This document shows, piece after piece, positions 7,808-62,298 of a stretch of 64,000 nucleotides of DNA. Positions within the stretch are counted from its first letter, which is position 1, and every line of letters begins with the position of its first letter. The DNA comes from Squalus acanthias (taxonomy: Eukaryota). The translations under genes were made by a program, and so were the position numbers. Where the stretch lies: positions 1,488,001-1,552,000 of the forward strand of contig CM059449.1 in the NCBI GenBank assembly GCA_030390025.1, written 5' to 3'. Below the pieces are notes generated by a model. That model saw nothing but the letters and a program-made list of their open reading frames with translations, did no database searches and was not told the origin of the DNA.

Positions 7808-7898
7808 CTGTAACTGAAGAATGAATAGCATTTAAATACTGTCACAGCACACATTGTACAGATAATCCAGACTTCATGCCTTTAACCCAGTCTCTTAC

Positions 7899-15200: not shown

Positions 15201-15393
15201 CAGCCCTCACCACCCCTCCCCCCAAGCCCAACAACTCTCCCAATATCTAATCTCCTCCAGCCCTACAACCCTCCCTTTCTCTGTAATCTCTTCCAGCCCT
15301 ACAACCCTCCCTAACTCTGCAATCTCTTCCAGCCCTACAACCCTCCCTATCTCTGCAATCTCCTCCAGCCCTACAACCCTCCCTATCTCAGTA
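15176..15393 (+). repeat. 36-bp minisatellite block 1
   Basis: Unit ctctgtaacctcctccagccctacaaccctccctat. Confidence 0.85.
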
Positions 15394-21047: not shown

Positions 21048-21489
21048 TGATGCGGATTCATGACGTGATCCGGACTCGAGTCGTCGCTGGCTTGTTCACA
21101 GATGTGATTCCCAGTAAAAAAGTAAAAATTTTCCCAGTAAAAAAGTAAAAATTTTAAAGCTTTTCGTTTTACATACAGACGGCAGCTTTTGACACGTTAG
21201 AACCCCTGCGACTACACCTCATTGTCTCAGTTGTCTCTTGCTATGTCTTTGATGTGGTACCTTCCTGGCTGACTTGATTAACTTTATCACACCTCGGCAG
21301 ATAGTCAGGATGATTTAATTTAGTGGTCTGCAATTGTAAGGTACACATGCTTTGTTCTCTATCTATATATGCTTTGGCGATTCTGTATCTAATTTACTTC
21401 ACCTGAGGAAGGAGCAATCGATAGCTCCGAAAGCTTGTGATTTCAAATAAAACTGTTGGACTATAACCTGGTGTTGTGCGACCTCTCAA
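21048..21489 (+). mobile_element. 442-bp non-coding Penelope family 1 insertion
   Basis: 12-bp TSD ttctatgagata (21036-21047 and 21490-21501); ends in hammerhead + aataaa + ggactataacctggtgttgtg. Confidence 0.85.
21399..21440 (+). ncRNA. Minimal hammerhead ribozyme (PLE family 1)
   Basis: tcac CTGAGGA aggagc aatcgata gctcc GAAAGCTT gtga. Confidence 0.75.
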
Positions 21490-24400
21490 TTCTATGAGAT
21501 AGCCAGTTACTTATCCAATTGGCCAAATTTCCCTCTATCCCACAACTCCTTACTTTCTTCATGAGCCGACCATGGGGAACCTTATCAAATGCCTTACTAA
21601 AATCCATGTATACGACATCAACTGCTGTACCTTCATCTACACACTTAGTTACCTCCTCAAAGAATTCAATCAAATTTGTTAGGCAAGACTTACCCTTCAC
21701 GAATCCGTGTTGACTATCCCGGATTAAGTTGCATCTTTCCAAATGGTCATAAATCCTATCCCTCAGAACCTTTTCCATTATCTTACCAACCACCGAAGTA
21801 AGACTAACCAGCCTATAATTACCAGGGTCATTCCTATTTCCTTTCTTGAAGAGAGGAACAACATTCGCCACTCTCCAGTCCTCTGGCACCATCCCCGTGG
21901 ACAGTGAGGACCCAAAGATCAAAGCCAAAGGCTCCGCAATCTCCTCCCTTGCCTCCCAAAGAATCCTAGGATATATCCCATCTGGCCCAGGGGACTTATC
22001 GACCCTCAGGTTCTTCAAAATTGCTAAAACATCTTCCCTCAGAACATCTACCTCCTCCAGCCTATCCACCTTTATCACACTCTCATCCTCAAAAACATGG
22101 CCCCTCTCCTCGGTGAACACTGAAGAAAAGTATTCATTCATCACCTCTCCTATCTCTTCTGACTCCATGCACAAGTTCCCACTACTGTCCTTGACCGGCC
22201 CTACCCTCACCCTGGTCATTCTTTTATTTCTCACATAAGAGTAAAAAGCCTTGGGGTTTTCCTTGATCCGACCCGCCAAGGACTTCTCATGCCCCCTCCT
22301 AGCTCTCCTAAGCTCTTTTTTTAGCTCATTCCTTGCTACCTTGTACCCCTCAATCGACCCAACTGAACCTTGTTTTCTCATCCTTACATACGCTTCCTTT
22401 TTCCTCTTGACTAGACATTCAACCTCTTTTGTGAACCATGGTTCTCTCACTCGGCCATTTCCTCCCTGCCTGACAGGGACATACCTATCAAGGACACGCA
22501 GTAATTGCTCCATGAAAAAGCTCCACTTTTCGTTTGTGCCTTTCCCTGATAGTTTCTGTTCCCATCTTATGCTGCCTAATCGCATCATAATTACCCCTCC
22601 CCCAATTATAAACCCTGCCCTACCGTATGGCCCTATCCCTCTCCATTGCAATAGTGAAAGTCACCGAATTGTGGTCACTATCTCCAAAGTGCTCTCCCAC
22701 ATACAAATCAAACACTTGGCCCGGTTCATTACCCAGTACCAAATCCAACGTGGCCCCACCTCTTGTCGGCCTATCCACATATTGTGTCAGGAAACCCTCC
22801 TGCACACACTGTGCAAAAACTATCCCATCCGAACTGTTTGACCTATAAAGGTTCCAATCAATATTTGGAAAGTTGAAGTCACCCATGACAACTACTCTGT
22901 GACCTCCACACCTATTCATAATCTGCTTTGCAATTTCTTCCTCCACATCTTTATTACTATTTGGGGGCCTGTAGAAAACTCCTAACAACGTGACCGCTCC
23001 TTTCCTATTTCTAACTTCAGCCCATATTACCTCAGACGGCAGATCCCCCTCGAACTGCCTTTCTGCCGCTGTTAAACTATCCTTGATTAACAATGCTACT
23101 CCTCCACCTTTCTTACCACCTTCCCTACTCTTACTGAAACATCTATACCCCGGAACTTCCAACAACCATTCCTGTCCCTGTTCTAACCATGTCTCCGTAA
23201 TGGCCACCACATCGTAGTCCCAAGTACCAATCCACGCTCCAAGTTCTCCTACCTTATTCCGGATGCTCCTTGCGTTGAAGTAGACGCACTTCAAGCCATC
23301 TTCCTGTCTGCCGGTACATTCCTGCGACCTTGATACCCTCCTCAGTACCTCCCTACACTCACCACTGGCTCCTGGACTACAGCCCTTTTTCCCATCCCCC
23401 TGACAAATTAGTTTAAACCCCCCCGAAGAGCCGTAGCAAATTTCCCTCCCAGGATATTGGTGCCCCTCTGGTTCAGGTGCAAACCGTCCTGTTTGTACAG
23501 GTCCCACCTTCCCCAGAATGTGCTCCAATTATCCACATAACTGAAACCCTCCCCCCTACACCATCCCTGCAGCCACGTGTTTATCTGCACTCTCTCCCTG
23601 TTCCTCAACTCGCTAGCACGTGGCACCGGCAACAAACCAGAAATTACAACATGGTTTGTACTGGCTCTCAGCTTCCAACCTAGCTCCCTAAATTCCTGTT
23701 TTAAATCCCCGTCCCTTCTCCTACCTATGTCGTTGGTACCGATGTGTACCACGACTTGTGATTGTTCCCCCTCCCCCTTGAGGATTCTGAAAACACGGTC
23801 CGAGACGTCACGGACCCTGGCACCCGGGAGGCAACATACCATCCGTGAGTCTCTTTTGCTGCCACAGAACCTCCTATCTGTCCCTCTGACTATTGAGTCC
23901 CCAATAACTATTGCTCTCCTGCTCTCCCCCCTTCCCTTCTGAGCCACAGGGACAGACTCAGCGCCGGAGATCCGGTCACCGTGGCTTACCACTGGTAGGT
24001 CGTCCCCCTCAACAGTATCCAAAGCGGTATACCTGTTACTGAGGGGAACGACCACAGAGGATCCCTGCACTGACTGCTTCCTCCTAGCCCCTCGCACCGT
24101 CACCCATCTATCTTCATTCTTTGGAGTAATTACATCCCTGAAGCTTTTATCTATGACCTCCTCTGCCTCCCGAATGATCCGAAGTTCATCCTGCTCCAGC
24201 TCCAGTTCCCTAACACGGTTTTCGAGGAGCTGGAGATGGGTGCACTTCCCACAGGTGTAATCAGCAGTTTATATTAAGATTCGTAACCAATCCGTGAAGG
24301 TGCATGCGGGCCAAGATCCAATCAGGAGGCAGGAATGAATTGTGCATGAGATGGCCATGTGTATTGTAATGTATAAAAATGTAGTGTTTGCTGTAACAAT

Positions 24401-35661: not shown

Positions 35662-37531
35662 TATAAATACTACCCCTTGCTGTGACAATCTATGTTTCTC
35701 TTTAGGTAAAGCTTATAGGTTTAGGCCAGATTTTTGGTGACTTGAATCAGTAACGTTTTGATTTTATTGCATGAAATTCTGGGATTTTTAAATTGCTGTT
35801 TGCGTTCACATCCCTCTTCCATGGCAAACATTTTCCCCAGTTAAGTCTGAACTCTAAGTATCCCAATCTATCCAACACTTGAGCACTGCTCCCATATGTG
35901 AGAGGATATTCCAGAGAGAAAGAAAGACTCTTAAGGGAAGGATGAACCATCCGTGGCGAACTAATGAAGTAAAGGATGGTATCAAATTGAAAACAAAAGT
36001 ATACAATGTTGCGAAGAATAGTGAAAGGCCAGAGGATTGGGAAATTTGAAAAAAACAGCAAAGGGCGACTAAAGAAATGATAGAGAAGATAGCTTATGAG
36101 AGTAAGCTAGCAAGAAATATAAAAACAGACAGTAAGATCTTCTACAGGTATATAAAAAGGAAGAGAGTAGCTGAAGTAAACGTTGGTCCCCTCGAGGATG
36201 AGTCTGGGGAATTAATAATGGGAAACAGGGAAATGGCAGAGACCTTGAACAAATATTTTGTATCGGTCTTCACAGTAGAAGACACTAAAAGCATCCCAAT
36301 AATGGATAATCAAGGGGCTATTGGGGGGGGGGGGTGGACTTAAAACAATCACTATCAGTAGAGAGAAAGTACTAGGCAAACTAATGGGACTAAAGGTGGA
36401 CAAGTCATCTGAACCGAATGGCGTGCATCCTAGAGCCTTAAAAGAGGTCATGATGCAGAGATGCCGGTGTTGGACTGGGGTGGACAAAAGTGAGAAGTCG
36501 CACAACACCAGGTTATAGTCCAACAGCTTTATTTGAAATCACAAGCTTTCGGAGCTGCTGACTGAGGAGCAGCAGCAGCAGCATCAGAGTGGTGGTCTCT
36601 GTGACCAGGAAGAGGAGAAGGAGAAGGAGACCAGACAGCAGACCACCACCAACAACCACAACCACAACTGAGGTGCCTGGAGAGAGAGGACAGGACGGGA
36701 GAAAGAAAAGAAAAGAAGGCCAAGGCCAATAACAACAGAGGAGAGGATTTCCACACTGCCTCCTCAATTGGCCTCCATTTTAGGAGAGGGAGAGAGGGGA
36801 GAAAACACCCCAACAACAAACATCATCTGTTTGGAAGGAGGGAGGAAGGAAAGAACAACAGCTACAGGTGGGTGTGATTCTGGTGCACTCTCCCAGAGAC
36901 TTTGTTTTGTAGGTGGGGGGAGGAAAGAAGAAAAGAAGAGGGCCGGAACATCCAAGGGGTGTGTGTGTGTGTGGCTTCTGTAAAAGCTAGGCTGCACACA
37001 CCATATTAAACACCCCTTTCCCATTGCCTGACCTGGGACAGCTGGAGCTGCCTAGGTGAAGTCCCCAATTAATTTAATCTTATTGGGCATCGTTAAGACC
37101 TGGTGCAGGACTGAGCCTGGGCATCTCCAGCTATCCCAGGTGAAGACATCTTCTCCCCCCACCAGAAGACCACCACCAAAGACTTTTATTACATCGGAGA
37201 GTGCACCCCCCTGCCAACACCCACCCACCATCCTGAGTGGCGACCCTGCCCTTGCGGCTTCCCTCCTTCCCACCCCCCTCTCTCTCTCTCTTTGTCTCTT
37301 GTCTCTCTCTGCCTCTCTCTCTAAGAGGCACCTCAATTAACTTTTTATTAAGTACCCATTGAGCAGAGGGCAGAAGGCCCCTCTCCTAATTAATTCATAA
37401 AAAGGGAGAGGTGTGCCTTCAATTTAAGAGCTCCCTCTGCTCAGGGGAAAACTAAAACAAAAAAACCGAGGCCATTAACACCTTCAGGCCTGTGACTTGG
37501 GGTGAGTGTAGCCCTTAAAGAACCCTCCATT

Positions 37532-39688
37532 ATGGCGAGTACATCTTCGTCGGTGGCGGGGGCAGTGAGGACGTATGCGAGCGTGGCAGCCGCGGCCACG
37601 GCTGCAGCCACGAGTCCTCCTGTTACCCCGTCACCTTTTACCCTCCTTACGAGGAAGAATGGGGTCAAGAGCTACACTCACCCCAACATGACTATAGAGG
37701 CGTGCGTTAAAGCCATGGCTGGGGTTGTCGGCCCTTCAGCCATCGTCGCCGCCTCTAAAATGTACGGCAAGGCTGTGTTCTTCCTGGGGTCGGAGCGGGC
37801 GGTGTTCCTGGCCATCGAGAAGGGGCTCACCGTGGGCGGGACCTTCCTGCCGGTGGACCCCCTTGAGGCCACCGCGCAAAGGATTGTGGTTTCCAACGTC
37901 CCGCCCTTTGTTCCGGGTGAGCTCCTCCTCCCCCACCTACGTCAACTGGGGGAGGTGAGGTCGGGGATCACACCCATCCCGCTCGGCTTCCGGGAAGCCA
38001 GCCTTCGGCACGTCTTCTCCTTCCGGCGCCAGCTTTTCGTCCGGCTGGCGCGGGAGGAGGACGCGGATGGCGCGTTCACGGTGCTCCACGGGGGGACCGC
38101 CCACCGCGTCTTCTGGACCTCGGACGGCGTGCGGTGCTACGCCTGTAAGGAGGTGGGGCACGTCCGCAAAAACTGCCCCGCCTCCAAGGCCGCCACGACA
38201 CCTGGCGCGGCCGGGGTTGGCGCCGCCGCCCCCCCTCCCCCTGATACTGTCCGCGCGTCGACGGCGACGGATGCGCGGTCGAAATCGGAGGCCAACTCCA
38301 CCACGGCCTCCGGCGGGGAGGAGGGAGAGCGTCCGGGGGGAAGGAAGGCGCGTAGGAAAAACAAACACCTAAGGGCGGATCCCCTCGCGGAGGAAACATC
38401 AGAATTGACCGAACTCACGCCCGAGTACATGGCGGAGTTGGTCGGGACGCATGAGACTGGGGGGGTCCTCGTGCCCGGGCCCGTGACCGTGACCGCAACT
38501 GCTGAGGCAGTTGAATCAAGACCTGCGGCCGGGCTCGGGCCCGAGGGGCCCAAGAAACCCAGTCGTCGGAAGGGGGCAGAGAGGGAGGCCCCAGCAGACA
38601 TGGAGGCCTCCCCCTCTCCGGGCCCCAACTTGTTAAAAAGAAAGCTCCGCCCCCAGCAGGAGGACTGCGAGGAGGAAGGTCCCTCCGCAAAAGGGGGGCA
38701 GTCGCCCGCCGCGGGTGCTGCGCCCCACCCCACCACCGTCATCGTCGCGCGCGATCGGCAGGGGTCGTCTGTCCCTCGGGAGGGTGAGACAGCCGAGTCT
38801 GTCCGACCTGTGCCTCCCGGGGATGGGGAAGAGACCCTGCCCGTGGGGGGGGGCGCGGAACAACCCGCGGAGGGAAATGTAGTTACGGAACCGTTGCTCC
38901 TCGCCGGGTCGGGCGTCCTGGGGACTGGGGCGGGCGAGGCCAAAGAGGCTGAAGCCGAGCCCGCCTTTTATAACCCAGATATCTCCCAGGGACTGCTCGA
39001 CCTGGTGGAGGAGTGTAGCAATCCCCAGCCCGCTGGGTCGGAGGTTGGTGGCGGGGAGACGGAAAGCCCCCTGACTCCGTCTCTGTCGTTGGCGCCGGAC
39101 GTGCTGGAGGAATTTGGGATTATTTTCTCCCCGGTTTCTCCGGTCGCCCCGGCGCCTGAGGCGGGGGGGGGCCCCGAACCGCCGCCGCCGCCTCCCGGCC
39201 CGGCGCCCCTGAAGGAGCCCAGGGTGGACTCCTCTGCCACCGATCCTGGGGGTGGGATCGTGACGGAGGCGGGGCCGGCCGGTGCGGCCGAGCCGTTCGC
39301 TGCACCCTGTGTGACGGACGGGTTGGCCGCCGGTGACAACCTCCCGGAGGAGGACGGGGACTCGGTGGGGGGCTTCGAGGACGATTTGGAGTCCATCGGC
39401 AGCGAGGTGATGGACGCCCTCGTGCCCTTCACCGACTCTCCCCTCATCCCCGTAGGGGAACTCCGGGATTTTATGGCCGTGAGCCAGGGTCGTCACAAGA
39501 AGATCCGGCTGGCCCTCGACAAGTGGTCGGAGCTGGCGCTGCTCGTCGTGTCCGTCCGCGCCGCCGTTAAAATCATGGGCGCGGACAAGGACGTTGGCCG
39601 GCTCGAGCTGCGTCGGCTCAAGACGTTCCACACTGGGCTGCTGAGGGAGTGGCGGTCGTCAGTGACCGCCCTCCCTCCCCTCCGTTAG
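37532..39688 (+). CDS. Tx1 ORF1 (RNA-binding N-terminus, CCHC zinc knuckle, long Pro/Glu/Ala-rich region)
   Basis: ATG at 37532; VGPSAIVAASKM, SNVPPF, HVFSFRRQ, CYACKEVGHVRKNC. Confidence 0.9.
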   Translation: MASTSSSVAGAVRTYASVAAAATAAATSPPVTPSPFTLLTRKNGVKSYTHPNMTIEACVKAMAGVVGPSAIVAASKMYGKAVFFLGSERAVFLAIEKGLTVGGTFLPVDPLEATAQRIVVSNVPPFVPGELLLPHLRQLGEVRSGITPIPLGFREASLRHVFSFRRQLFVRLAREEDADGAFTVLHGGTAHRVFWTSDGVRCYACKEVGHVRKNCPASKAATTPGAAGVGAAAPPPPDTVRASTATDARSKSEANSTTASGGEEGERPGGRKARRKNKHLRADPLAEETSELTELTPEYMAELVGTHETGGVLVPGPVTVTATAEAVESRPAAGLGPEGPKKPSRRKGAEREAPADMEASPSPGPNLLKRKLRPQQEDCEEEGPSAKGGQSPAAGAAPHPTTVIVARDRQGSSVPREGETAESVRPVPPGDGEETLPVGGGAEQPAEGNVVTEPLLLAGSGVLGTGAGEAKEAEAEPAFYNPDISQGLLDLVEECSNPQPAGSEVGGGETESPLTPSLSLAPDVLEEFGIIFSPVSPVAPAPEAGGGPEPPPPPPGPAPLKEPRVDSSATDPGGGIVTEAGPAGAAEPFAAPCVTDGLAAGDNLPEEDGDSVGGFEDDLESIGSEVMDALVPFTDSPLIPVGELRDFMAVSQGRHKKIRLALDKWSELALLVVSVRAAVKIMGADKDVGRLELRRLKTFHTGLLREWRSSVTALPPLR

Positions 39689-39713
39689 GTAGAGGTTGCA
39701 CTATGCTTCTGAG

Positions 39714-42700
39714 ATGAAGATAACCATAGCCAGCCTCAACATCAACGGCAGCAGGGAGGCGCGCCGTAGATTCAATAACTTCTCGGTCCTTCGGGACGGG
39801 AAATATGCGGTGTGCTTCCTGCAAGAAACCCACACCGTTCCGGGAGACGAGGCCACGTGGCTCCTGGAGTGGCAAGGAGGGGTCAGCATGAGTCACCTCT
39901 CCAACAATTCCTGCGGGGTGGCTGTCTTGCTGGCCCCGCATTTTCAGCCGGAGATCTTGAGGGTCAAGGAGCACGTGCCGGGCCGCTTGCTCCAGGTCAC
40001 TGTTCGCCTGGGAGGCGTGCCGCTCCATTTAGTGAACGTGTACGCCCCCCGGACCGGTGCGCAGCAAGTGCGCTTCTTCGGAGAAGTGTCCGCTCTTCTG
40101 GGCTCCATCGACGTGGGCGAGTGCGTCATCCTCGGGGGGGATTTCAATTGTACCCTCGAGGCGCGGGACCGGTCGGGTCCCCCGCGAAGCCCGGCGGCGA
40201 TGGAGAAGTTGCGGGACCTGGTCGGGTCCTTCGACTTGGTGGACGTCTGGCGAAATCTCCATCCCGACTCCAGCGCCTTCACGAGCGTGAGGTCTGGAGG
40301 AGGAAGGTCCAGAATCGACCGCCTTTACATTTCCCGGGCGTACGTCTCCTGCGTTCCGGCGGCTTCCATGCGGCCGGTGCCGTGCACGGACCACCACCTG
40401 GTGTGGGCGGAGCTCGCTCCGCTGCGCGCGCGGGGGGGGTCCGCGTACTGGCATTTTAACAACCTGCTGCTGGAGGACGCGCGGTTCCGGGATTCGTTTC
40501 GCCGGTTCTGGGCCGACTGGAGAAGGAAGCGGGGAGGCTTCCCCTCCTTGAGGCTATGGTGGGACGTGGGCAAGGCTCACGTCCGCGTCTTCTGTCAGGA
40601 GTACGCGAAGGGGTCGACCAAGAGGCGGGAGGCCCGGGTCGGGCGATTGGAGAAAGAAGTGCTCGACCTGGAGTCCCGTCTCGGTCAGGTCGTCGAGGAC
40701 CCGGCCCTGCGGAAGGTGTACGAAGAGAAGAAGGGCGCGCTGAAGGACCTGCAGCTGGTCGGGTCCCGAGGCGCGTACGTGAGGTCGCGGATCCAGCTCC
40801 TGCGGGACCTGGACCGCGGCTCCCCCTTCTTCTACTCGCTGGAAAAAAGACGGGGGGTCCGTAAGCAGCTCTTGGGGCTGCTGGCCGACGACGGATCTCT
40901 GGTCTCGGATCCGGAGGGCATCAGCGCGGAGGCCCGGGCCTATTACGGGGCTCTGTTCTCTTCGGATCCGTCCAGCGAGGATGCGCGCAGAGTTTTGTGG
41001 GAGGACCTGCCGAAGGTCGGCCCGGAGGGCGCCGAGAATCTAGAAGCTCCGCTAAGCCTGGCGGAGCTGACCGGCGCCCTGCGCCAGCTCTCGAGGGGCA
41101 AGTCCCCGGGGCTGGACGGGCTGACCGTGGAGTTCCACAGGGCGTTCTGGGACGTCTTGGGGGACGACTACGCGCGGGTCCTGGGGGAAAGTCTGGCGAC
41201 CGGGGAGATGCCCCTCTCTTGGCGCAGGGCGGTCATCGTCCTGCTGCCCAAGAAGGGCGATCTCCGCCTACTTAAGAACTGGCGCCCGGTCTCCCTCCTC
41301 AGCACGGACTACAAAATTTTCGCCAGGGCTATGTCTGCTCGCCTTGGCACCGTGCTGGCCCGCATGATCCACCCCGACCAGTCCTACACGGTCCCGGGCC
41401 GGAGTATCCACGATAACATCCATCTGGTCCGGGACCTGGTCCACCATTCCCAGAGGGCTGGTCTGTCGGTCGCCTTCCTTTCCCTGGATCAGGAGAAGGC
41501 GTTCGACAGGGTGGATCACGAGTATCTTTTCGGGACTCTGCGCGCATTCGGGTTCGGGACGCATTTCGTCGCCCGGATCCGACTTCTGTACGCCGCCGCG
41601 GAGTGTCTGATTAAAGTTAACGGGTCTTTGACGGCGCCCCTTCGCTTCGGGAGGGGGGTGCGTCAGGGATGCCCCATGTCCGGTCAGTTATACGCCGTTT
41701 GCGTGGAGCCTTTCCTGCGCCTCTTGCGGAAGAGGTTGACGGGACTGGCTCTGCAAGGGCCGGGCGTGGAGGTGGTCCTCTCGGCTTACGCCGATGACGT
41801 GCTCCTCGCGGTCACGGATCCCGTCGACTTGCGGAGGATGCGAGAATGCCAGCAGATTTACTCGGACGCATCCTCCGCCAAGATCAACTGGGAGAAATGT
41901 TCTGGACTCCTGGTGGGCCCATGGCGGGTGGACTCCCTGCCGGAGGAGTTCGGGCCTTTCGCCTGGAGCACCACGCACCTCCTCTACTTGGGAGTCTACC
42001 TCAGCCCGGCCGAGGACGCCTGGCCGGCGAACTGGCAAGAGCTGGAGGCCAAAGTCACCGCTCGCCTAGGGCGCTGGACAGGACTGCTCCGAGTGTTGTC
42101 CTACAGGGGTCGAGCGCTGGTCATAAACCAGCTGGTGGCCGCCATGTTGTGGTACCGGTTGATCACTTTGATCCCTCCCCCTGCGTTTGTCGCCAAGATG
42201 CAGAAGAAGCTCGTCGACTTCTTCTGGGACAAAAGGAAGCACTGGGTCTCTGCCGCGGTTTTGAGTCTCCCGCTTAGGGAGGGCGGTCAGGCGCTGGTGT
42301 GCCTTCGCACCCAGGCGGCGACTTTCCGTCTTCAGACGCTGCAGAGATACCTGTACGTGGAGAATCCTCCTAGGTGGCGTGCGCTGGCGACGTATTTCTT
42401 CCGCCAGCTGCACGGCCTCAATTACGACACGCAGCTCCTGTTTGTGAGAGTGGGTGGCACGCGTGCCAGCCTGCGGGAGCTGCCTGTCTTCTACCAGGAA
42501 CTGCTATGGGTTTGGAACAGCGTCGCCTCCGAGCGCAGTTCTCCCCCGTCAGGAGCGGCGGCCGTCCTTCGGGAGCCGCTGTTCAGGAATCCGCACCTCC
42601 ACGACCGCGGGTTCGGCTGGCTGGCGGAGGGCAGGGCTGTGCCCGGTAAGGTGACCAGAGTCGGGGACCTGCTCGATGGCGGAGGAGCGGGCTGGATGGC

Positions 42701-43613
42701 GCCGGAGGAGTTGGCGAGGCGCATGTCTTGGGTCAACGTCCGGCTCGCGGTCAAAGCCATCGAGTCGCTAAAAGTGGCACTGGGCCCCGTCTCCACTAGG
42801 TGTGTCGAGGAGGCTCAAGCACGTGGGGCGATCCCGTCCGAACTGACCCCCGTTCGGACGGAATTCCTTATCGGCGCCCGGCCCCGAATCCTCCCTCGGG
42901 AGCCGCCGCCTCACCACTTGAGCCTTCTCGGAGAAATGCCCTCCGTGCCCTTTCAATCCGCACGGAGGCGTTTCCTGTACGGGCTGCTCCTGCACACTCT
43001 CCACTTTGCCATCTTCGTCTGCCGTCCGGACACGCCTTGGCGTACCATCCTGCCGTCCGGCGGAGGCGAAGGTCCCCATTGGAAGGCTCTCTACGCGGGA
43101 GTCTTCCCTTGTTCTATTGGGGACTTGGCCTGGAGGGTGTTGCACGGAGCAGTCCCGTGCAATAGGATTTTAAGTAGGTTTACGGACTCCCAGGCTGCTT
43201 GCCATTTCTGCGGCCTGGAGGAGTCCGTCTATCACATTTATGTTGAATGTGAGAGGTTGCAGCCCCTCTTTCATTATTTGAAGGGGCTGCTCCTCAATTT
43301 CTGGTTGCACTTCAGCCCCACGCTCCTGATCTACGGTCACCCGGTGCGGAGGGGAGCGGGTAGGTCGGAGGACCTCCTCGTAGGACTGCTCCTGGGCCTG
43401 GCCAAGAAAGCCATTAATTGGTCCAGGCAGCGGGCGGTCGAGGGGGTCGTTCGGCCCGATTGCCTGCCTCTCTTCCGCGGCCATGTTCGCGCCCGGGTGG
43501 CCCTGGAGATGGAGCACGCGGTGTCCGCCGGCACGCTTGAGTTTTTCCGCGACCGGTGGGCGCCGCGGGGACTGGAGTGCATCGTCACCCCGGACTTCCA
43601 AATTTTGATTTGA
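39714..43613 (+). CDS. Tx1 ORF2 (APE endonuclease, RT, C-terminal CCHC), uninterrupted
   Basis: SLNING, LQETH, GGDFN, SRIDR, TDH; KSPGLDG, NWRPVSLL, LDQEKAFD, GVRQGCPMS, AYADD; CHFCGLEESVYHIYVEC. Confidence 0.96.
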   Translation: MKITIASLNINGSREARRRFNNFSVLRDGKYAVCFLQETHTVPGDEATWLLEWQGGVSMSHLSNNSCGVAVLLAPHFQPEILRVKEHVPGRLLQVTVRLGGVPLHLVNVYAPRTGAQQVRFFGEVSALLGSIDVGECVILGGDFNCTLEARDRSGPPRSPAAMEKLRDLVGSFDLVDVWRNLHPDSSAFTSVRSGGGRSRIDRLYISRAYVSCVPAASMRPVPCTDHHLVWAELAPLRARGGSAYWHFNNLLLEDARFRDSFRRFWADWRRKRGGFPSLRLWWDVGKAHVRVFCQEYAKGSTKRREARVGRLEKEVLDLESRLGQVVEDPALRKVYEEKKGALKDLQLVGSRGAYVRSRIQLLRDLDRGSPFFYSLEKRRGVRKQLLGLLADDGSLVSDPEGISAEARAYYGALFSSDPSSEDARRVLWEDLPKVGPEGAENLEAPLSLAELTGALRQLSRGKSPGLDGLTVEFHRAFWDVLGDDYARVLGESLATGEMPLSWRRAVIVLLPKKGDLRLLKNWRPVSLLSTDYKIFARAMSARLGTVLARMIHPDQSYTVPGRSIHDNIHLVRDLVHHSQRAGLSVAFLSLDQEKAFDRVDHEYLFGTLRAFGFGTHFVARIRLLYAAAECLIKVNGSLTAPLRFGRGVRQGCPMSGQLYAVCVEPFLRLLRKRLTGLALQGPGVEVVLSAYADDVLLAVTDPVDLRRMRECQQIYSDASSAKINWEKCSGLLVGPWRVDSLPEEFGPFAWSTTHLLYLGVYLSPAEDAWPANWQELEAKVTARLGRWTGLLRVLSYRGRALVINQLVAAMLWYRLITLIPPPAFVAKMQKKLVDFFWDKRKHWVSAAVLSLPLREGGQALVCLRTQAATFRLQTLQRYLYVENPPRWRALATYFFRQLHGLNYDTQLLFVRVGGTRASLRELPVFYQELLWVWNSVASERSSPPSGAAAVLREPLFRNPHLHDRGFGWLAEGRAVPGKVTRVGDLLDGGGAGWMAPEELARRMSWVNVRLAVKAIESLKVALGPVSTRCVEEAQARGAIPSELTPVRTEFLIGARPRILPREPPPHHLSLLGEMPSVPFQSARRRFLYGLLLHTLHFAIFVCRPDTPWRTILPSGGGEGPHWKALYAGVFPCSIGDLAWRVLHGAVPCNRILSRFTDSQAACHFCGLEESVYHIYVECERLQPLFHYLKGLLLNFWLHFSPTLLIYGHPVRRGAGRSEDLLVGLLLGLAKKAINWSRQRAVEGVVRPDCLPLFRGHVRARVALEMEHAVSAGTLEFFRDRWAPRGLECIVTPDFQILI

Positions 43614-44711
43614 TTTGTTAAGTTTCATTTAAAGTTTTAATTGATTTACAGTAAATTTGTGTTTGTCCAACCAAAAAGATCAACACCAGGTTATAGTCCA
43701 ACAGCTTTATTTGAAATCACAAGCTTTCGGAGCTGCTGACGGAGGAGCAGCAGCAGCAGCAGAGTGGTGGTCTCTGTGAGCAGGAAGAGGAGAAGGAGAA
43801 GGAGCCCAGACAGCAGACCACCACCAACAACCAACAACCACAACTGAGGTGCCTGGAGAGGGAGGACAGGAGAGGAGAAAGAAAAGAAGGAAAGGAAGGC
43901 CAAGGCCATTAACAACAGAGGAGAGGCCTTTCCACACTGCCTCCTCAATTGGCCTCCATTTTAGGAGAGGGAGAGAGGGGAGAAAACACCAACAACAAAC
44001 ATCATCTGTTTGGAAGGAGGGAGGAAGGAAAGAACAGCTACAGGTGGGTGTTATTTCTGGGGCACTCTCCCAGAGACTTTGTTTTGTAGGTGGGGGGAGG
44101 AAAGAAGAAAAAGAAGAAGGCCGGAACATCCAAGGGGTGTGTGTGTGTGGCTTCTGTAAAAGCTAGGCCGCACACACCATATTAAACACCCCTTTCCCAT
44201 TGCCTGACCTGGGACAGCTGGAGCTGCCTAGGTGAAGGCCCCAATTAATTTAATCTTATTGGGCATTGTTAAGACCTGGTGCAGGACTGAGCCTGGGCAT
44301 CTCCAGCTATCCCAGGTGAAGACATCTTCTCCCCCCACCAGAAGACCACCACCAAAGACTTTTATTACATCGGAGAGTGCACCCCCCTGCCAACACCCAC
44401 CCACCCACCATCCTGAGTGGCGACACTGCCCTTGCGGCTTCCCTCCTTCCCACCCCCTCTCTCTCTCTCTTTGTCTCTTGTCTCTCTCTGCCTCTCTCTC
44501 TAAGAGGCACCTCAATCTATTTTTAATTAAGTACCCATTGAGCAGAGGGGAGAAGGCCCCTCTCCCAATTAATTCATATAAAGGGAGAGGTGTGCCTTCA
44601 ATCTAAGAGCTCCCTCTGCTCAGGGGAAAACTAAAACAAAAAAACCGAGGCCATTAACACCTTCAGGCCTGTGACTTGGGGTGAGTGTAGCCCTTAAAAG
44701 ACCCGTCCATT

Positions 44712-46853
44712 ATGGCAAGCACATCTTCGTCGGTGGCGGGGGCAGCGAGGACGTATGCGAGCGTGGCAGCGGCGGCCGCGGCCACGAGTCCTCCTGTTAC
44801 CCCGTCACCTTTTACCCTCCTTACGAGGAAGAATGGGGTCAAGAGCTACACTCACCCCAACATGACTATAGAGGCGTGTGTTAAAGCCATGGCTGGGGTT
44901 GTCGGCCCTTCAGCCATCGTCGCCGCCTCTAAAATGTAGGGCAAGGCTGTGTTCTTCCTGGGGTCGGTGCGGGCGGTGTCCCTGGCCATCGAGAAGGGGC
45001 TCACCGTGGGCGGGACCTTCCTGCCGGTGGACCCCCTTGAGGCCACCGCGCAAAGGATTGTGGTTTCCAACGTCCCGCCCTTTGTTCCGGGTGAGCTCCT
45101 CCTCCCCCACCTACGTCAACTGGGGGAGGTGAGGTCGGGGATCACACCCATCCCGCTCGGCTTCCGGGAAGCCAGCCTTCGGCACGTCTTCTCCTTCCGG
45201 CGCCAGCTTTTCATCCGGCTGGCGCGGGAGGAGGACGCGGATGGCGCGTTCACGGTGCTCCACGGGGGGACTGCCCACCGCGTCTTCTGGACCTCGGACG
45301 GCGTGCGGTGCTACGCCTGTAAGGAGGTGGGGCACGTCCGCAAAAACTGCCCCGCCTCCAAGGCCGCCACGACACCTGGCGCGGCCAGGGTTGGCGCCGC
45401 CGCCCCCCCTCCCCCTGATACTGTCCGCGCGTCGACGGCGACGGATGCGCGGTCGAAATCGGAGGCCAACACCACCACGGCCTCCGGCGGGGAGGAGGGA
45501 GAGCGTCCGGGGGGAAGGAAGGCGCGTAGGAAAAATAAACACCTAAGGGCGGATCCCCTCGCGGAGGAAACATCGGAGTTGACCGAACTCACGCCCGAGT
45601 ACATCGCGGAGTTGGTCGGGACGCATGAGACTGGGGGGGTCCTCATGCCCGGGGCCGTGACCGTGACCGCAACTGCTGAGGCAGCTAAATCAAGACCTGC
45701 GGCCGGGCTCGGGCCCGAGGGGCCCAAGAAACCCAGTCGTCGGAAGGGGGCAGAGAGGGAGGCCCCAGCAGTAATGGAGGCCTCCCCCTCTCCGGGCCCC
45801 AACTTGTTAAAAAGAAAGCTCCGCCCCCAGCAGGAGGACTGCGAGGAGGAAGGTCCCTCCGCAAAAGGGGGGCAGTCGCCCGCCGCGGGTGCTGCGCCCC
45901 ACCCCACCACCGTCATCGTCGCGCGCGATCGGCAGGGGTCGTCTGTCCCTCGGGAGGGTGAGACAGCCGAGTCTGTCCGACCTGTGCCTCCCGGGGATGG
46001 GGAAGAGACCCTGCCCGTGGGGGGGGGCGCGGAACAACCCGCGGAGGGAAATGTAGTTCCGGAACCGTTGCTCCTCGCCGGGTCGGGCGTCCTGGGGACT
46101 GGGGCGGGCGAGGCCAAAGAGGCTGAAGCCGAGCCCGCCTTTTATAACCCAGACATCTCCCAGGGACTGCTCGACCTAGTGGAGGAGTGTAGCAATCCCC
46201 AGCCCGCTGGGTCGGAGGTTGGTGGCGGGGAGACGGAAAGCCCCTTGACTCCGTCTCTGTTGTTGGCGCCGGACGTGCTGGAGGAATTTGGGATTATTTT
46301 CTCCCCGGTTTCTCCGGCGCCTGAGGCGGGTGGGGGCCCCGAACCGCCGCCGCCGCCTCCCGGCCCGGCGCCCCTGAAGGAGCCCAGGGTGGACTCCTCT
46401 GCCACCGATCCTGGGGGTGGGATCGTGACGGAGGCGGGGCCGGCCGGTGCGGCCGAGCCGTTCGCTGCACCCCGTGCGACGGACGGGTCGGCCGCCGGTG
46501 ACGACCTCCCGGAGGAGGACGGGGACTCGGTGGTGGGCATCGAGGACGATTTGGAGTCCATCGGCAGCGAGGTGATGGACGCCCTCGTGCCCTTCACCGA
46601 CTCTCCCCTCATCCCCGTAGGGGAACTCCGGGATTTTATGGCCGTGAGCCAGGGTCGTCACAAGAAGATCCGGCTGGCCCTCGACAAGTGGTCGGAGCTG
46701 GCGCTGCTCGTCGTGTCCGTCCGCGCCGCCGTTAAAATCATGGGCGCGGACAAGGACGTTGGCCGGCTCGAGCTGCGTCGGCTCAAGAGTTTCCACACTG
46801 GGCTGCTGAGGGAGTGGCGGTCGTCAGTGACCGCGCTCCCTCCCCTCCGTTAG
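44712..46853 (+). pseudogene. Tx1 copy 2 ORF1 with premature TAG
   Basis: TAC in copy 1 is TAG at 44937-44939. Confidence 0.9.
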
Positions 46854-46878
46854 GTAGAGGTTGCACTATGCTTCTGAG

Positions 46879-49800
46879 ATGAAGATAACCATAGCCAGCC
46901 TCAACATCAACGGCAGCAGGGAGGCGCGCCGTAGATTCAATAACTTCTCGGTCCTTCGGGACGGGAAATATGCGGTGTGCTTCCTGCAAGAAACCCACAC
47001 CGTTCCGGGAGACGAGGCCACGTGGCTCCTGGAGTGGCAAGGAGGGGTCAGCATGAGTCACCTCTCTAACAATTCCTGCGGGGTGGCTGTCTTGCTGGCC
47101 CCGCATTTTCAGCCGGAGATCTTGAGGGTCAAGGAGCACGTGCCGGGCCGCTTGCTCCAGGTCACTGTTCGCCTGGGAGGTGTGCCGCTCCATTTAGTGA
47201 ACGTGTACGCCCCCTGGACCGGTGCGCAGCAAGTGCGCTTCTTCGGAGAAGTGTCCGCTCTTCTGGGCTCCATCGACGTGGGCGAGTGCGTCATCCTCGG
47301 GGGGGATTTCAATTGTACCCTCGAGGCGCGGGACCGGTCGGGTCCCCCGCGAAGCCCGGCGACGATGGAGAAGTTGCGGGACCTGGTCGGGTCCTTCGAC
47401 TTGGTGGACGTCTGGCGAAATCTCCATCCCGACTCCAGCGCCTTCACGAGCGTGAGGTCTGGAGGAGGAAGGTCCGGAATCGACCGCCTTTACATTTCCC
47501 GGGCGTACGTCTCCTGCGTTCCGGCGGCTTCCATGCGGCCGGTGCCGTGCACGGACCACCACCTGGTGTGGGCGGAGCTCGCTCCGCTGCGCGCGCGGGG
47601 GGTGTCCGCGTACTGGCATTTTAACAACCTGCTGCTGGAGGACGCGCGGTTCCGGGATTCGTTTCGCCGGTTCTGGGCCGACTGGAGAAGGAAGCGGGGA
47701 GGCTTCCCCTCCTTGAGGCTATGGTGGGACGTGGGCAAGGCTCACGTCCGCGTCTTCTGTCAGGAGTACGCGAAGGGGTCGACCAAGAGGCGGGAGGCCC
47801 GGGTCGGGCGATTGGAGAAAGAAGTGCTCGACCTGGAGTCCCGTCTCGGTCAAGTCGTCGAGGACCCGGTCCTGCGGAAGGTGTACGAAGAGAAGAAGGG
47901 CGCGCTGAAGGACCTGCAGCTGGTCGGGTCCCGAGGCGCGTACGTGAGGTCGCGGATCCAGCTCCTGCGGGACCTGGACCGCGGCTCCCCCTTCTTCTAC
48001 TCGCTGGAAAAAAGACGGGGGGTCCGTAAGCAGCTCTTGGGGCTGCTGGCCGACGACGGATCTCTGGTCTCGGATCCGGAGGGCATCAGCGCGGAGGCCC
48101 GGGCCTATTACGGGGCTCTGTTCTCTTCGGATCCGTCCAGCGAGGATGCGCGCAGAGTTTTGTGGGAGGACCTGCCGAAGGTCGGCCCGGAGGGCGCCGA
48201 GAATTTAGAAGCTCCGCTAAGCCTGGCGGAGCTGACCGGCGCCCTGCGCCAGCTCTCGAGGGGCAAGTCCCCGGGGCTGGACGGGCTGACCGTGGAGTTC
48301 CACAGGGCGTTCTGGGACGTCTTGGGGGACGACTACGCGCGGGTCCTGGGGGAAAGTCTGGCGACCGGGGAGATGCCCCTCTCTTGGCGCAGGGCGGTCA
48401 TCGTCCTGCTGCCCAAGAAGGGCGATCTCTGCCTACTTAAGAACTGGTGCCCGGTCTCCCTCCTCAGCACGGACTACAAAATTTTCACCAGGGCTATGTC
48501 TGCTCGCCTTGGCACCGTGCTGGCCCGCATGATCCACCCCGACCAGTCCTACACGGTCCCGGGCCGGAGTATCCACGATAACATCCATCTGGTCCGGGAT
48601 CTGGTCCACCATTCCCAGAGGGCTGGTCTGTCGGTCGCCTTCCTTTCCCTAGATCAGGAGAAGGCGTTCGACAGGGTGGATCACGAGTATCTTTTCGGGA
48701 CTCTGCGCGCATTCGGGTTCGGGACGCATTTCGTCGCCCGGATCCGACTTCTGTACGCCGCCGCGGAGTGTCTCATGAAAGTTAACGGGTCTTTGACGGC
48801 GCCCCTTCGCTTCGGGAGGGGGGTGCGTCAGGGATGCCCCATGTCCGGTCAGTTATACGCCGTTTGCGTGGAGCCTTTCCTGCGCCTCTTGCGGAAGAGG
48901 TTGACGGGACTGGCTCTGCAAGGGCCGGGCGTGGAGGTGGTCCTCTCGGCTTACGCCGATGACGTGCTCCTCGCGGTCACGGATCCCGTCGACTTGCGGA
49001 GGATGTGAGAATGCCAGCAGATTTACTCGGACGCATCCTCCGCCAAGATCAACTGGGAGAAATGTTCTGGACTCCTGGTGGGCCCATGGCGGGTGGACTC
49101 CCTGCCGGAGGAGTTCGGGCCTTTCGCCTGGAGCACCACGCACCTCCTCTACCTGGGAGTCTACCTCAGCCCGGCCGAGGACGCCTGGCCGGCGAACTGG
49201 CAAGAGCTGGAGGCCAAAGTCACCGCTCGCCTAGGGCGCTGGACAGGACTGCTCCGAGTGTTGTCCTACAGGGGTCGAGCGCTGGTCATAAACCAGCTGG
49301 TGGCCGCCATGTTGTGGTACCGGTTGGTCACTTTGATCCCTCCCCCTGCGTTTGTCGCCAAGATGCAGAAGAAGCTCGTCGACTTCTTCTGGGACAAAAG
49401 GAAGCACTGGGTCTCTGCCGCGGTTTTGAGTCTCCCGCTTAGGGAGGGCGGTCAGGCGCTGGTGTGCCTTCGCACCCAGGCGGCGACTTTCCGTCTTCAG
49501 ACGCTGCAGAGATACCTGTACGTGGAGAATCCTCCTAGGTGGCGTGCGCTGGCGACGTATTTCTTCCGCCAGCTGCACGGCCTCAATTACGACACGCAGC
49601 TCCTGTTTGTGAGAGTGGGTGGCACGCGTGCCAGCCTGCGGGAGCTGCCTGTCTTCTACCAGGAACTGCTATGGGTTTGGAACAGCGTCGCCTCCGAGCG
49701 CAGTTCTCCCCCGTCAGGAGCGGCGGCCGTCCTTCGGGAGCCGCTGTTCAGGAATCCGCACCTCCACGACCGCGGGTTCGGCTGGCTGGCGGAGGGCAGG

Positions 49801-50778
49801 GCTGTGCCCGGTAAGGTGACCAGAGTCGGGGACCTGCTCGATGGCGGAGGAGTGGGCTGGATGGCGCCGGAGGAGTTGGCGAGGCGCATGTCCTGGGTCA
49901 ACGTCCGGCTCGCGGTCAAAGCCATCGAGTCGCTAAAAGTGGCACTGGGCCCCGTCTCCACTAGGTGTGTCGAGGAGGCTCAAGCACGTGGGGCGATCCC
50001 GTCCGAACTGACCCCCGTTCGGACGGAATTCCTTATCGGCGCCCGGCCCCGAATCCTCCCTCGGGAGCCGCCGCCTCACCACTTGAGCCTTCTCGGAGAA
50101 ATGCCCTCCGTGCCCTTTCAATCCGCACGGAGGCGTTTCCTGTACGGGCTGCTCCTGCACACTCTCCACTTTGCCATCTTCGTCTGCCGTCCGGACACGC
50201 CTTGGCGTACCATCCTGCCGTCCGGCGGAGGCGAAGGTCCCCATTGGAAGGCTCTCTACGCGGGAGTCTTCCCTTGTTCTATTGGGGACTTGGCCTGGAG
50301 GGTGTTGCACGGAGCAGTCCCGTGCAATAGGATTTTAAGTAGGTTTACGGACTCCCAGGCTGCTTGCCATTTCTGCGGCCTGGAGGAGTCCGTCTATCAC
50401 ATTTATGTTGAATGTGAGAGGTTGCAGCCCCTCTTTCATTATTTGAAGGGGCTGCTCCTCAATTTCTGGTTGCACTTCAGCCCCACGCTCCTGATCTACG
50501 GTCACCCGGTGCGGAGGGGAGCGGGTAGGTCGGAGGACCTCCTCGTAGGACTGCTCCTGGGCCTGGCCAAGAAAGCCATTAATTGGTCCAGGCAGCGGGC
50601 GGTCGAGGGGGTCGTTCGGCCCGATTGCCTGCCTCTCTTCCGCGGCCATGTTCGCGCCCGGGTGGCCCTGGAGATGGAGCACGCGGTGTCCGCCGGCACG
50701 CTTGAGTTTTTCCGCGACCGGTGGGCGCCGCGGGGGCTGGAGTGCATCGTCACCCCGGACTTCCAAATTTTGATTTGA
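46879..50778 (+). pseudogene. Tx1 copy 2 ORF2 with premature TGA
   Basis: CGA in copy 1 is TGA at 49006-49008 (CpG transition), just after YADD. Confidence 0.92.
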
Positions 50779-50882
50779 TTTATTAAGTTTCATTTAAAGT
50801 TTTAATTGATTTACAGTAAATTTGGGTTCTGTCAAACCAAAAAGATGAGCACCAGGTTATAGTCCAACAGTTTTATTTGAAA

Positions 50883-50919
50883 TCACAAGCTTTCGGAGCG
50901 CTGCTCCTTCGTCAGGTGA
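50883..50919 (-). ncRNA. Minimal hammerhead ribozyme (PLE family 1), intact at the downstream Tx1 junction
   Basis: Reverse complement reads tcac CTGACGA aggagc agc gctcc GAAAGCTT gtga. Confidence 0.82.
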
Positions 50920-53202
50920 AGTAAAGGAATACAAATCTTAAAGAGGTGGCTGCAGAGATAGTGGATGCATTGGTTGTAATCTACCAAAATTCCCTGAATT
51001 CTGGAGGTCCCAGCAGACTGGAAAACCGCAAATGTAACGCCCCTATTTAAGAAAGGAGGGAGACAGAAAGCAGGCAACTATTGACCAGTTAGCTGAACAT
51101 CTGTCAGTGGGAAAATGCTGGAGTCCATCATTAAGGAAGTGATAGCAGGACATTTAGAAAATTACAATATAGTCAAGCAGAGTCAGCATGGTTTTATGAA
51201 AGGGAAATCATATTTGACAAATTTGCTGGAGTTCTTTGAGGATGTAACGAGCAGGGTGGATAAAGGGGAACCAGCAGATGTTGTGTATTTGGATTTCCAG
51301 AAGGCATTTGATAAGGTGCCACATAAAAGGTTACTACACAAGATAAGAGATCACGGGGTTGGGGGTAATATATTAGCATGGATAGAGGATTGGCTAACAG
51401 AAAACAGAGAGTCGGGATCAATGGGTCATTTTCAGGTTGGCAAGCTGTAACTAGTGGGGTGCCGCAGGGATCAGTGCTGGGGCCTCAACTATTTACAATC
51501 TATATTAATGACTTGGATGAAGGGACTGAGTGTAATGGAGCCAAATTTGCTGATGATTCAAAGATAGGTGGGAAAGCAAATTGTGTGGAGGATGCACAGA
51601 ATCTCCAAAGGGATATAGATAGACTAAGTGAGTGGGCAAACATATGACAGATGGAGTTTAATGTCGGAAAATGCAAGGTTATCCACTTTGGTAGGAAAAA
51701 TAAAAAAGCAAATTATTATTTAAATGGGGAGAGATTACAAAATGCTGAGGTACGGAGGGATTGGGGGATCACTGTACATGAATCACAAAAAGTTAGCATG
51801 CAGGTACAGCAAGTAATTAGGAAGGCAAATGGAGTGTTGGCCTTTATTGCAAAGGGAATGGAGTATAAAAGTAGGGAAGTCCTGTTACAACTGTACAGGG
51901 CATTGGTGAGACCACACCTGGAGTACTGCATACAGTTTTGGTCTCCTTATTTAAGGAAGGATATACTTGCATTGGAGGCAGTTCAGAGAAGGTTCACGAG
52001 GTTGATTTCGGAGATGAAGGGGTTATCTTATGAAGAAAGGTTGAGCAGGTTGGGCCTATACTCATTGGAGTTTAGAAGAATGAGAGGGGATCTTATTGAA
52101 ACATAAAAGTTTCTGAAGGGGCTTGACAGGGTAGATGCAGAGAGGATGTTTCCCCTCATGGGGAATCTAGAACTAGGGGGCATAGTTTCAGAATAAGGGG
52201 GCACCCATTTAAATCGGAAATGAGGAGGAATTTCTTCTGAGGGTAGTGAATCTTTGGAATTCTCTTCCCCAGAGAGCTGTGGAGGCTAGGTCATTGAATA
52301 TATTTAAGGTGGAGATAGACAGATTTTTGAACGATAAAGGAGTCAAGGGTTATGGGGAGCAGGCAGGGAAGTGGAGTTGAGGCTAAGATCGGGTCAGCCA
52401 TGATGTTATTGAATGGTGGAGCAGGCTCAAGGGGCCAAATGACCGACTCCTGCTCCTACATCTTATGTTCTTATGTTTTTATATGTAGGATCTTCTGACA
52501 CCAGGGAAAGGTACAAGTAAAAAAGTCTGATATTCAATCTGTCTCTTCTCTAGTTTACAGTGTTGGTCTCGGTCTCTCGCCTTTATCAATAATTCTATGT
52601 TCTGCGCTGCTCTGAGCATCTTTATTTCTGCCTTAGATGAACACATGCTGTCCTACACACTACTTCTCGTCCTGCATCTTTGTAAATCAAGACTAATTCC
52701 ATGGTCTCATTATCTCATTCTTTCCCAGGACCTCCTCACTTCTGTAATACTTTTCTTTACCAGAATCTCCCAGCATTGAAAACCCCAGCATGGTGTCCCT
52801 TAAGCAGTTTTTCTTGGTATTCCTCTACTGGTTCTGCCTTCCTGGTGCCCCACACTATTGCACTTTGATCCATCACACAGGTTTCGCAATTTAAAAAGAT
52901 GCAGTAACGGAACCAAGAAAATTCTCTGATAAAATGCATTGTCCTTTTCTCTTTGAATACATCACCCAGCACTTGATAAAGCATATGGCCAGTATCCATG
53001 TCTGAAAATACACATTACACCACTCATAATATACATGAACTGCACAATCTTTGACTGTATCAGATAATATTAATCGAGGGACCTAGAAATGGAGAGACTC
53101 CAGTGTCCACACAAAAAAATATACCATATTGGTAAACAAATACTGCCAGTAAATATTATTCACTTGACATGCTTCAGACACCCCACCCACCTAGTTTCCT
53201 GA

Positions 53203-61556: not shown

Positions 61557-62298
61557 TGTTGGGGTATTTTAAACCAACACTCGACAAGGTTTTCAGATCG
61601 ATAGTCAAGTTGTCTTTATTACACCGGTGGGGAGACAATCTGCTCTGTCTTTAACCAGACTTCTCCAAATTGTTACAGCAAACACTACATTAAAATACAC
61701 GACAGGCTCATTCACAATTCATTCCTGCAACCTGATAGGATATATATCCTAAGGTAAACATGTGTAAGCTGCCTCCACAATTATTCACTCAAACTGCTGA
61801 ACGCTGCTTAAAAGATACCTTGGAATGTGACCCAGATAATAAAGTTCTTATGGGCAGTTGAAAATCTAGACACCACTTAATTGCTTTTTCGTCTTCAAAG
61901 GTCAGCTATCTTGACCGCCTCTATGGATGTGGCCTGTCATTCTTGCACCAAAATGAGAAGTCGCACAACACCAGGTTATAGTCCAACAATTTTATTTAAA
62001 ATTACGAGCTTTACGCTCCGCTGCTTCTTCAGATATAAATGAGAAGTCGCACAACACCAGGTTATAGTCCAACAGGTAGAGTAGCTGAGAGAATCTCCCA
62101 GAATTCACAATATAAATACAGCAAAAATTTATTCAAATCTTTCCCTACTTCAGATATATACACACATCATAATATACACACACAGAACAATGCGTCTGCA
62201 GAGATACAATCTGTTAGGGAGGCATTACATCAAAGACACATTCTTACACCATTCAGTGAAACTGCCAGCGATCTCTTTTTAACTCTTTCCCCACTTCA
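61557..62298 (-). mobile_element. Solo LTR related to the ERV at 19729
   Basis: TG...CA ends, 4-bp TSD ctgg (61553-61556 and 62299-62302), colinear with both halves of the split LTR. Confidence 0.88.
61951..62238 (-). mobile_element. Penelope family 1 insertion with partial tandem termini, inside the solo LTR
   Basis: atgagaagtcgcacaacaccaggttatagtccaaca occurs twice; 13-bp TSD cattcttRcacca (61938-61950 and 62239-62251). Confidence 0.8.

Follow-up and report, generated by a model that had tools for sequence, protein, structure and literature searches.

Two long interspersed nuclear elements (LINEs) that lie head to tail, with the same short segment before, between and behind them, raise the question of whether the pair records a single insertion that was later doubled in place or two insertions that found the same site. 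The arrangement occurs in a stretch of 64,000 nt from Squalus acanthias (contig CM059449.1, positions 1,488,001-1,552,000), which we call the window and whose own numbering is used throughout, and both elements are of the Tx1 type. We regard it as reasonably probable that a Tx1-clade LINE inserts sequence-specifically into an abundant short hammerhead-like repeat, and that the locus was built by two successive insertions, which duplicated the target segment.

The composite spans about 14.5 kb and reads, from left to right, A-T1-L1-T2-L2-T3-B, where T is the duplicated target segment, A and B are the two parts of the host repeat, and L1 and L2 are the upstream and downstream Tx1 copies. Its features are as follows.

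36437-36448, plus strand: left short duplication of 12 bp, outside the whole composite and within a CR1-like LINE, taken from direct reading
36449-36502, minus strand: part A of the host repeat (3' side, ribozyme-sense orientation), ending at the putative nick site of the 3' junction
36503-36555, no strand assigned: T1, first copy of the target segment, 53 bp, the same as T2
36556-43680, plus strand: Tx1 copy L1, 7125 bp, both open reading frames (ORFs) open
36558-36573, plus strand: start of L1 resembling the reverse complement of part B (14/16; L2 equivalent at 43736-43751, 15/16)
43681-43733, no strand assigned: T2, the copy of the target segment that separates L1 from L2
43734-50846, plus strand: Tx1 copy L2, 7113 bp, ORFs broken
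50847-50849, plus strand: three bases at the 3' junction of L2, unlike the host and unlike the L1 junction
50850-50899, no strand assigned: T3, the last of the three copies of the target segment, 50 bp
50900-50936, minus strand: part B of the host repeat, with the CUGACGA box and the 5' arm of helix II on its minus strand
50937-50947, plus strand: right short duplication of 11 bp, outside the composite

Read directly, T1 and T2 show no differences over their 53 bp, and the 50 bp of T3 depart from them at one mismatch, a variant that matches a free copy of the segment at 21424-21473 on the minus strand. When a 50-mer of T was used in a pattern search, the window gave four matches at up to three mismatches against none expected; a chance origin of the triple repeat is rejected because 100 shuffles predict no matches. 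The preliminary description of this DNA had placed T before, between and after two head-to-tail LINEs and had set both 5' junctions at the same nucleotide. T is present in all three places, and reading the two junctions shows that L1 and L2 each begin directly after the identical final base of T. Both elements are full-length and terminate in ...aaaaagat, and their end-to-end alignment gives 98.2% identity, with 89 mismatches and 15 indel events. Compared as insertions (n = 2 events at one locus), they share the 5' junction base and have 3' junctions no more than 3 bp apart, and two insertions at the same junction nucleotides are what site specificity predicts.

The coding capacity of the elements identifies the family. 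ORF1 of L1 (37532-39688, counted from the first ATG; 728 amino acids) has one CCHC knuckle (E 2.3e-4), and ORF2 (39714-43613) encodes, in this order, an endonuclease of the apurinic/apyrimidinic (APE) type, a reverse transcriptase (RT) and a C-terminal zinc-binding region. The corresponding Pfam matches are Exo_endo_phos at residues 12-233 (E 1.7e-11), RVT_1 at residues 518-767 (E 8.6e-38) and zf-RVT at residues 1127-1187, the last at E 4.4e-5 and 24.5 bits, which is under the 27.5-bit cut-off. The best database match of residues 800-1305 is the Xenopus laevis 'Transposon TX1 149 kDa protein' (E 6e-123), and in a full-length BLASTP comparison 653 of 1299 residues (50%) are identical to those of the Xenopus Tx1 ORF2. 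Because of this best match and this identity, both LINEs are confirmed, at the level of sequence, as members of the Tx1 clade that stand near its type element, Xenopus Tx1; the Tx1 identity given in the preliminary description is borne out by the domains as well. In L2, ORF2 has one in-frame stop (49006-49008), and ORF1 is broken by a stop (44937-44939) as well as by a 1-bp indel close to its beginning. Searches of the window with blastn and tblastn found no further Tx1 copies or fragments, only CR1-like RTs at 26-29% identity, and protein database searches returned ORF2 relatives at 43-66% identity and no near-identical copies.

Some further properties of the elements may be recorded here. 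The Tx1 ORFs (37502-43613) are rich in GC and CpG (ORF1 GC 0.67, 219 CpG; ORF2 GC 0.63, 363 CpG), and the 946-bp 5' untranslated region (UTR) contains just 7 CpG and abounds in low complexity of the GA and CAG types. Bases 3-18 of the LINE are similar to the reverse complement of part B (50902-50917), and 6 of 2000 shuffles of the first 60 bases of L1 score equally high. The likeness may have arisen by chance, the stretch being rich in CAG, or it may be left over from the origin of the 5' end or be part of target regeneration. A protein model of the sawshark Pristiophorus japonicus named 'collagen alpha-1(XI) chain-like' (P0022) shares 68% identity with the C-terminal part of ORF2, over 16% of the query; the match probably reflects a Tx1 fragment within a gene model, and it hints at Tx1 relatives in elasmobranchs.

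How the two copies differ from each other bears most directly on their history. Mismatches amount to 24/946 (2.5%) in the 5' UTR, 40/2187 (1.8%) in ORF1, 22/3918 (0.56%) in ORF2 and 3/67 (4.5%) in the 3' UTR, and divergence is strongly uneven across the 5' UTR, ORF1 and ORF2 (chi-square 34.5, p 3e-8). With CpG sites set aside, the same three regions diverge by 2.0%, 0.91% and 0.36%; changes at CpG sites number 20/438 in ORF1 versus 8/726 in ORF2 (p 0.0003). The indels are clustered as well, with 11 of the 15 events within the first 720 bp. A gradient that falls from UTR to ORF1 to ORF2 is the mark of selection on active lineages, whereas decay after a local duplication would be roughly even.

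Public sequence runs carry the argument further. Public contigs (Logan, short unitigs) of three DNA runs, together with one raw RNA run, were aligned to positions 42939-44528, a segment that includes 36 of the L1/L2 differences. Eleven of these have rows in the variant table; the other 25 have none, which makes the eleven a sample biased toward well-supported variants. At six of the eleven (43571, 43780, 44052, 44054, 44061 and 44108) each of the two states is found in several contigs, and the summed depths greatly exceed the approximately 28-53 that is typical of letters private to L2; three of the six (43780, 44052 and 44061) are transversions. At four positions (43805, 44238, 44267 and 44425) the letter of L2 is either private or not seen, and at the remaining one (44452) it is the L1 state that is rare. 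Polymorphisms that are shared in this way by other copies imply that L1 and L2 descend from different source elements.

The sequence into which the LINEs were inserted is itself a mobile-looking repeat. Once the LINEs are removed, a repeat of about 150 bp with a minimal hammerhead-like core is left, and this lies in turn within a CR1-like LINE. The outer flanks, A plus T1 (36449-36555) and T3 plus B (50850-50936), jointly align to an intact repeat elsewhere in the window and also to a degenerate pair of units.

21399-21489, minus strand: uninterrupted host repeat, a putative unoccupied target, within a CR1-like RT
61953-62075, plus strand: degenerate host unit with another behind it that is shortened on its B side (partial tandem)

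Uninterrupted copies had been claimed at both places. The claim stands for the first, and the second proves to be a degenerate tandem pair, the first unit of which is degenerate in its ribozyme-like core; both of its units begin at the same A-side base, so that the three free host units of the window have a common A-side end. The CR1-like paralogue at 12284-11738 is uninterrupted, and because the flanks of the composite (36200-36449 and 50937-51250) overlap on it by 8 bp, the host repeat appears to have a short target duplication of its own.

The core boxes of a hammerhead ribozyme are CUGANGA and GAAA. On the minus strand of the host repeat (50850-50935), a 4-bp helix I (UCAC/GUGA) is followed by CUGACGA and one extra A, then by a 5-bp helix II (GGAGC/GCUCC) with a 3-nt loop (AGC), and then by GAAA; the core boxes stand in the correct order between helices I and II, and a palindromic AGCU occupies the place where a helix III hairpin would be. 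In the free copy at 21399-21489 the boxes and helix II are preserved, the variable core base (N7) is changed and loop 2 is longer. According to the cited portion of one report (PMC6155905), the hammerheads of Penelope-like elements (PLEs) are mostly minimal versions that lack helix III, and because such forms are described there we believe the resemblance to be real. The traits that may recall PLEs, as far as three units can show them, are the one partial tandem, the unit shortened on its B side, the hammerhead-like core and the common A-side end. We also considered that the LINE might be co-transcribed with, and released by, the hammerhead, and this is rejected, as the motif is on the strand opposite to the LINE.

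In the public runs, both the Tx1 family and its target recur; of the contig alignment output, 18 of the 439 loose-end rows and 24 of the 9744 contig pieces are covered. The summed word depth of the T bin is 3 to 180 times that of the LINE bins in run X1 and 36 to 2600 times in run X6. The sequence ...GTGAGAAGTCGCA, which is the end of part A, is also the consensus of the overhangs that contigs of runs X1 and X6 show before T, so that A-type overhangs are seen in two of the DNA runs, and B-type overhangs behind T in all three (X1, X6 and X12). Contigs under two further organism labels carry the Tx1 family and the far commoner host motif. Contigs at least 99% identical to the Tx1 stretch number 2101/7723 for organism A and 528/1555 for organism B, and in organism C the family is mostly 90-95% alike (364/394 contigs). 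From the raw RNA run X21, 4 partial reads aligned, and as these fell on low-complexity parts of the 5' UTR the run gives no information on expression or transcript ends. In six runs of organisms A and B that are only guessed to be RNA (X9-X11, X13, X14 and X16), a share of 0.56-0.60 of the words sampled from the junction stretch is present, which hints that the Tx1 family is transcribed. Metagenome scans were blank for the ORF2 C-terminus and for a 21-base piece of T.

We propose the following course of events. The APE-type endonuclease would nick the ribozyme-sense strand at the border of A and T, about 40 nt past the putative ribozyme cleavage site, and this nick would prime reverse transcription; in the alignment of all host copies, the invariant columns are those that adjoin the A/T nick. 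A break in the opposite strand, at a distance of 50-53 bp and within the loop of helix II, would then leave T on either side of the new copy as a true duplication from staggered nicks. Because T is duplicated, the target would be regenerated. L2 may have entered first, into an intact A-T-B, with a 50-bp duplication and later decay, and L1 second, into the left-hand regenerated T, with a 53-bp duplication and still intact. This order fits, since L1 is open and L2 is broken and carries private letters. T1 equals T2 over 53 bp, yet the LINE bodies differ at 5 events within their first 106 bp, and so sharp a boundary between T and LINE divergence fits a recent duplication. The preliminary description had called the element specific for the hammerhead. 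The 5' junction does fall in helix II; the 3' junction lies some 40 nt beyond the putative cleavage site, and because only the 5' junction is in helix II this wording was overstated. On this reading the element is specific for the repeat, and the ribozyme core would be the site of the second break and not the site that is recognized.

Could a single Tx1 insertion have been doubled later, by unequal crossover or replication slippage between flanking copies of T, and then have drifted? The T-L-T-L-T layout is just what unequal exchange between flanking repeats produces, and the 98.2% likeness of the copies is in keeping with it. We nevertheless hold this to be improbable, given that divergence is strongly uneven along the element, that CpG-site changes differ between ORF1 and ORF2, and that 6 of the 11 checkable differences are multi-copy in the public contigs and hence not a product of decay in place. 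Unequal crossover had been named as an alternative at the outset; uneven divergence and shared family variants together disfavour it, and the pair probably did not arise by local duplication of one insertion. That the tandem is an artefact of assembly, with two dispersed copies collapsed or joined through their common T, we find scarcely credible: the L2 letters at 44238 and 44425 are in no X1 contig, but the other private L2 letters (43805 and 44267) are present in X1 at a depth like that of a single copy, and the outer flanks are those expected of a single CR1-like copy that has been interrupted and bears a matching short duplication.

Other alternatives concern the nature of T. If T, A and B were the LINE's own termini, in the manner of long terminal repeats, the free 150-bp repeats would have to be solo remnants left by the LINE or else short sequences derived from it, and it would be natural for the entire composite to sit within one short duplication in the CR1-like LINE, as it does. 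This account is very improbable in view of the depth of the T bin (3 to 180 times the LINE bins in X1, 36 to 2600 times in X6), the hammerhead-like core on the strand opposite to the LINE, and the free units, which have a constant A-side end, are shortened on the B side in one case and form a partial tandem in two; such a pattern fits a retroelement oriented opposite to the LINE. A more serious rival, which we think unlikely but not negligible, accepts a site-specific family and makes T donor-derived, with an RNA that starts upstream by read-in or otherwise carries T; each new copy would be joined at the border of A and T, and hardly any true duplication would occur. A variant and three leading bases are common to T1 and T2 and both missing from T3, a duplication of 50-53 bp is long for an APE-type LINE, and the likeness of the first 16-18 LINE bases to an inverted piece of the host suggests that host sequence was built into the element. 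Against this, a T that evolved as the 5' UTR does would show about 2.5 differences between the copies (the Poisson probability of none is about 0.08), and the identity of T1 and T2 is equally explained if they are the two halves of the duplication made by L1.

Several observations weigh against our preferred reading of two site-specific insertions into a hammerhead-like repeat. The verified insertion events are only two, both at one locus, and their duplications are unequal in length, at 50 bp for L2 (with three unmatched junction bases) and 53 bp for L1. The pattern in which T1 equals T2 and differs from T3 is also expected from a donor-derived T, and gene conversion between tandem copies could likewise yield uneven divergence. 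The changes in ORF2, at 10 synonymous versus 12 non-synonymous with a neutral synonymous share of 0.295, depart only weakly from neutrality (p 0.08). No alternative flanks of LINE 5' or 3' ends are found among the 18 loose-end rows seen of 439, an absence that is weak because random flanks give a poor consensus and could be hidden. The identity of the host is also affected. Rfam hammerhead models have no match at the gathering score in the whole window, nor at E values up to 10 on 401 and 96 bases, and the Rfam matches that were seen are only chance-level ones to unrelated families. The hammerhead call was made by inspection and one fold, and the fold is no stabler than those of shuffled sequences (z 0.17). 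No Penelope-type protein (RT/GIY-YIG) is encoded by the 10 other ORFs of at least 180 amino acids in the window, as judged by Pfam; these are of CR1 type (RVT_1, Exo_endo_phos, GDSL esterase) or have no Pfam match, a result that covers these 64 kb only and means that there is no autonomous PLE within the window. The earlier claim of a hammerhead is thus upheld by the core boxes and by helices I and II on the minus strand and fails to find a match in Rfam. Because of the Rfam result, the fold statistic and the lack of a Penelope ORF in the window, we use a cautious label: as judged from its sequence, the host is a hammerhead-like, Penelope-like short repeat and not a proven Penelope terminus, and it is probably derived from a Penelope-like element.

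A more ambitious version of our reading can be offered only tentatively, as one that is less likely than not. In it, a Tx1 lineage would regenerate its landing site each time it inserts, with the second-strand break placed at the loop of a DNA hairpin formed from ribozyme helix II, with a fixed duplication of 50-53 bp, and with a LINE start that mimics, in inverted form, the displaced half of the motif. If this is true, every insertion would leave a fresh competent target and head-to-tail arrays would follow, and Tx1 would be a parasite of ribozyme-constrained sequence that its host element can hardly mutate away.

Many Tx1-clade elements have a target preference, such as that of Tx1L for the DNA transposon Tx1D and of Keno for U2 genes, as related in the cited part of PMC4494074, and the endonuclease of Tx1L recognizes about 10 bp around its bottom-strand cut according to the portion of PMC1919474 drawn on here. 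Tx1L of Xenopus laevis is the closest named protein to our element and is like it in the order of APE, RT and zinc-binding region and in landing on another mobile element. The target of Tx1L is a piggyBac-type DNA transposon, unlike the short retroelement-type repeat with a hammerhead-like motif found here; the duplicated segment in the present family is 50-53 bp. In crocodilians, the Tx1-mobilized SINEU-3 prefers a site in Mariner-N4_AMi, and its tandems, which sandwich a duplication, are explained by sequential insertion (PMC4494074, in the section cited). Our locus is like this system in having a preferred site in an abundant transposon and tandem copies around a duplicated target. SINEU-3, on the same partial account, is a short interspersed nuclear element (SINE) with a duplication of about 16 bp in a DNA transposon, whereas here autonomous LINEs of 7.1 kb are flanked by a duplication approximately three times longer. 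Keno, which inserts into U2 small nuclear RNA genes, and Kibi and Koshi of teleosts belong to the same clade and likewise insert sequence-specifically into multicopy sequences, to the extent that PMC4494074 is cited for them.

The targets of these three are RNA genes or microsatellites, unlike the hammerhead-like repeat here. A long duplication made by a site-specific non-LTR (lacking long terminal repeats) element has reportedly been seen in the rotifer element R9, where it is said to reach an unusual 126 bp. R9 is an R2-type element that has a restriction-like endonuclease and inserts in 28S ribosomal DNA. The likeness therefore lies in the long duplication by a site-specific element, whereas ours is an APE-type Tx1 in a transposon. 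The host repeat, for its part, is like the minimal PLE hammerheads in its CUGACGA box, 5-bp helix II, GAAA box, 4-bp helix I and missing helix III hairpin, as these are set out in the relevant part of PMC6155905, and unlike them in the extra A after CUGACGA, in having no Rfam match, and in having no PLE coding sequence linked to it in the window. Given Tx1L, SINEU-3 and R9, the targeting of one transposable element by another, tandem stacking and long duplications each have precedent. A full-text literature search, with Repbase and Dfam outside its scope, returned no published case of Tx1 or any LINE targeting a Penelope-like or hammerhead repeat. Most likely, the family is a target-specific Tx1 lineage whose target is of a new kind and whose duplication is unusually long and regenerates the target.

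Target-specific LINEs provide natural models of how RNA-templated insertion might be programmed to a defined DNA site, and few of those of the APE type have a characterized target. The intact copy of 7 kb offers a defined target of about 100 bp that is present in very many copies, and a fixed long stagger between the strand breaks, which would make the system tractable for asking how an APE endonuclease and an RT position the second-strand cut. The locus would, in addition, clearly exemplify one retroelement living inside another, and because the insertions land in junk it bears on how active LINEs are tolerated in large repeat-rich genomes, as it does on the origin of tandem LINE arrays. Should T prove to be carried on the RNA, the family would inform how read-in transcripts guide 5' joining.

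Two observations on the surroundings of the composite complete the description of the window. The free repeat at 21399-21489 splits a CR1-like RT, with RVT_1 positions 5-107 and 111-194 encoded in separate ORFs on its two flanks. Positions 4499-24103 on the minus strand hold a cluster of CR1-type LINE remains with APE and RT sequences and, at 23411-24103, an ORF1 of the GDSL-esterase type.

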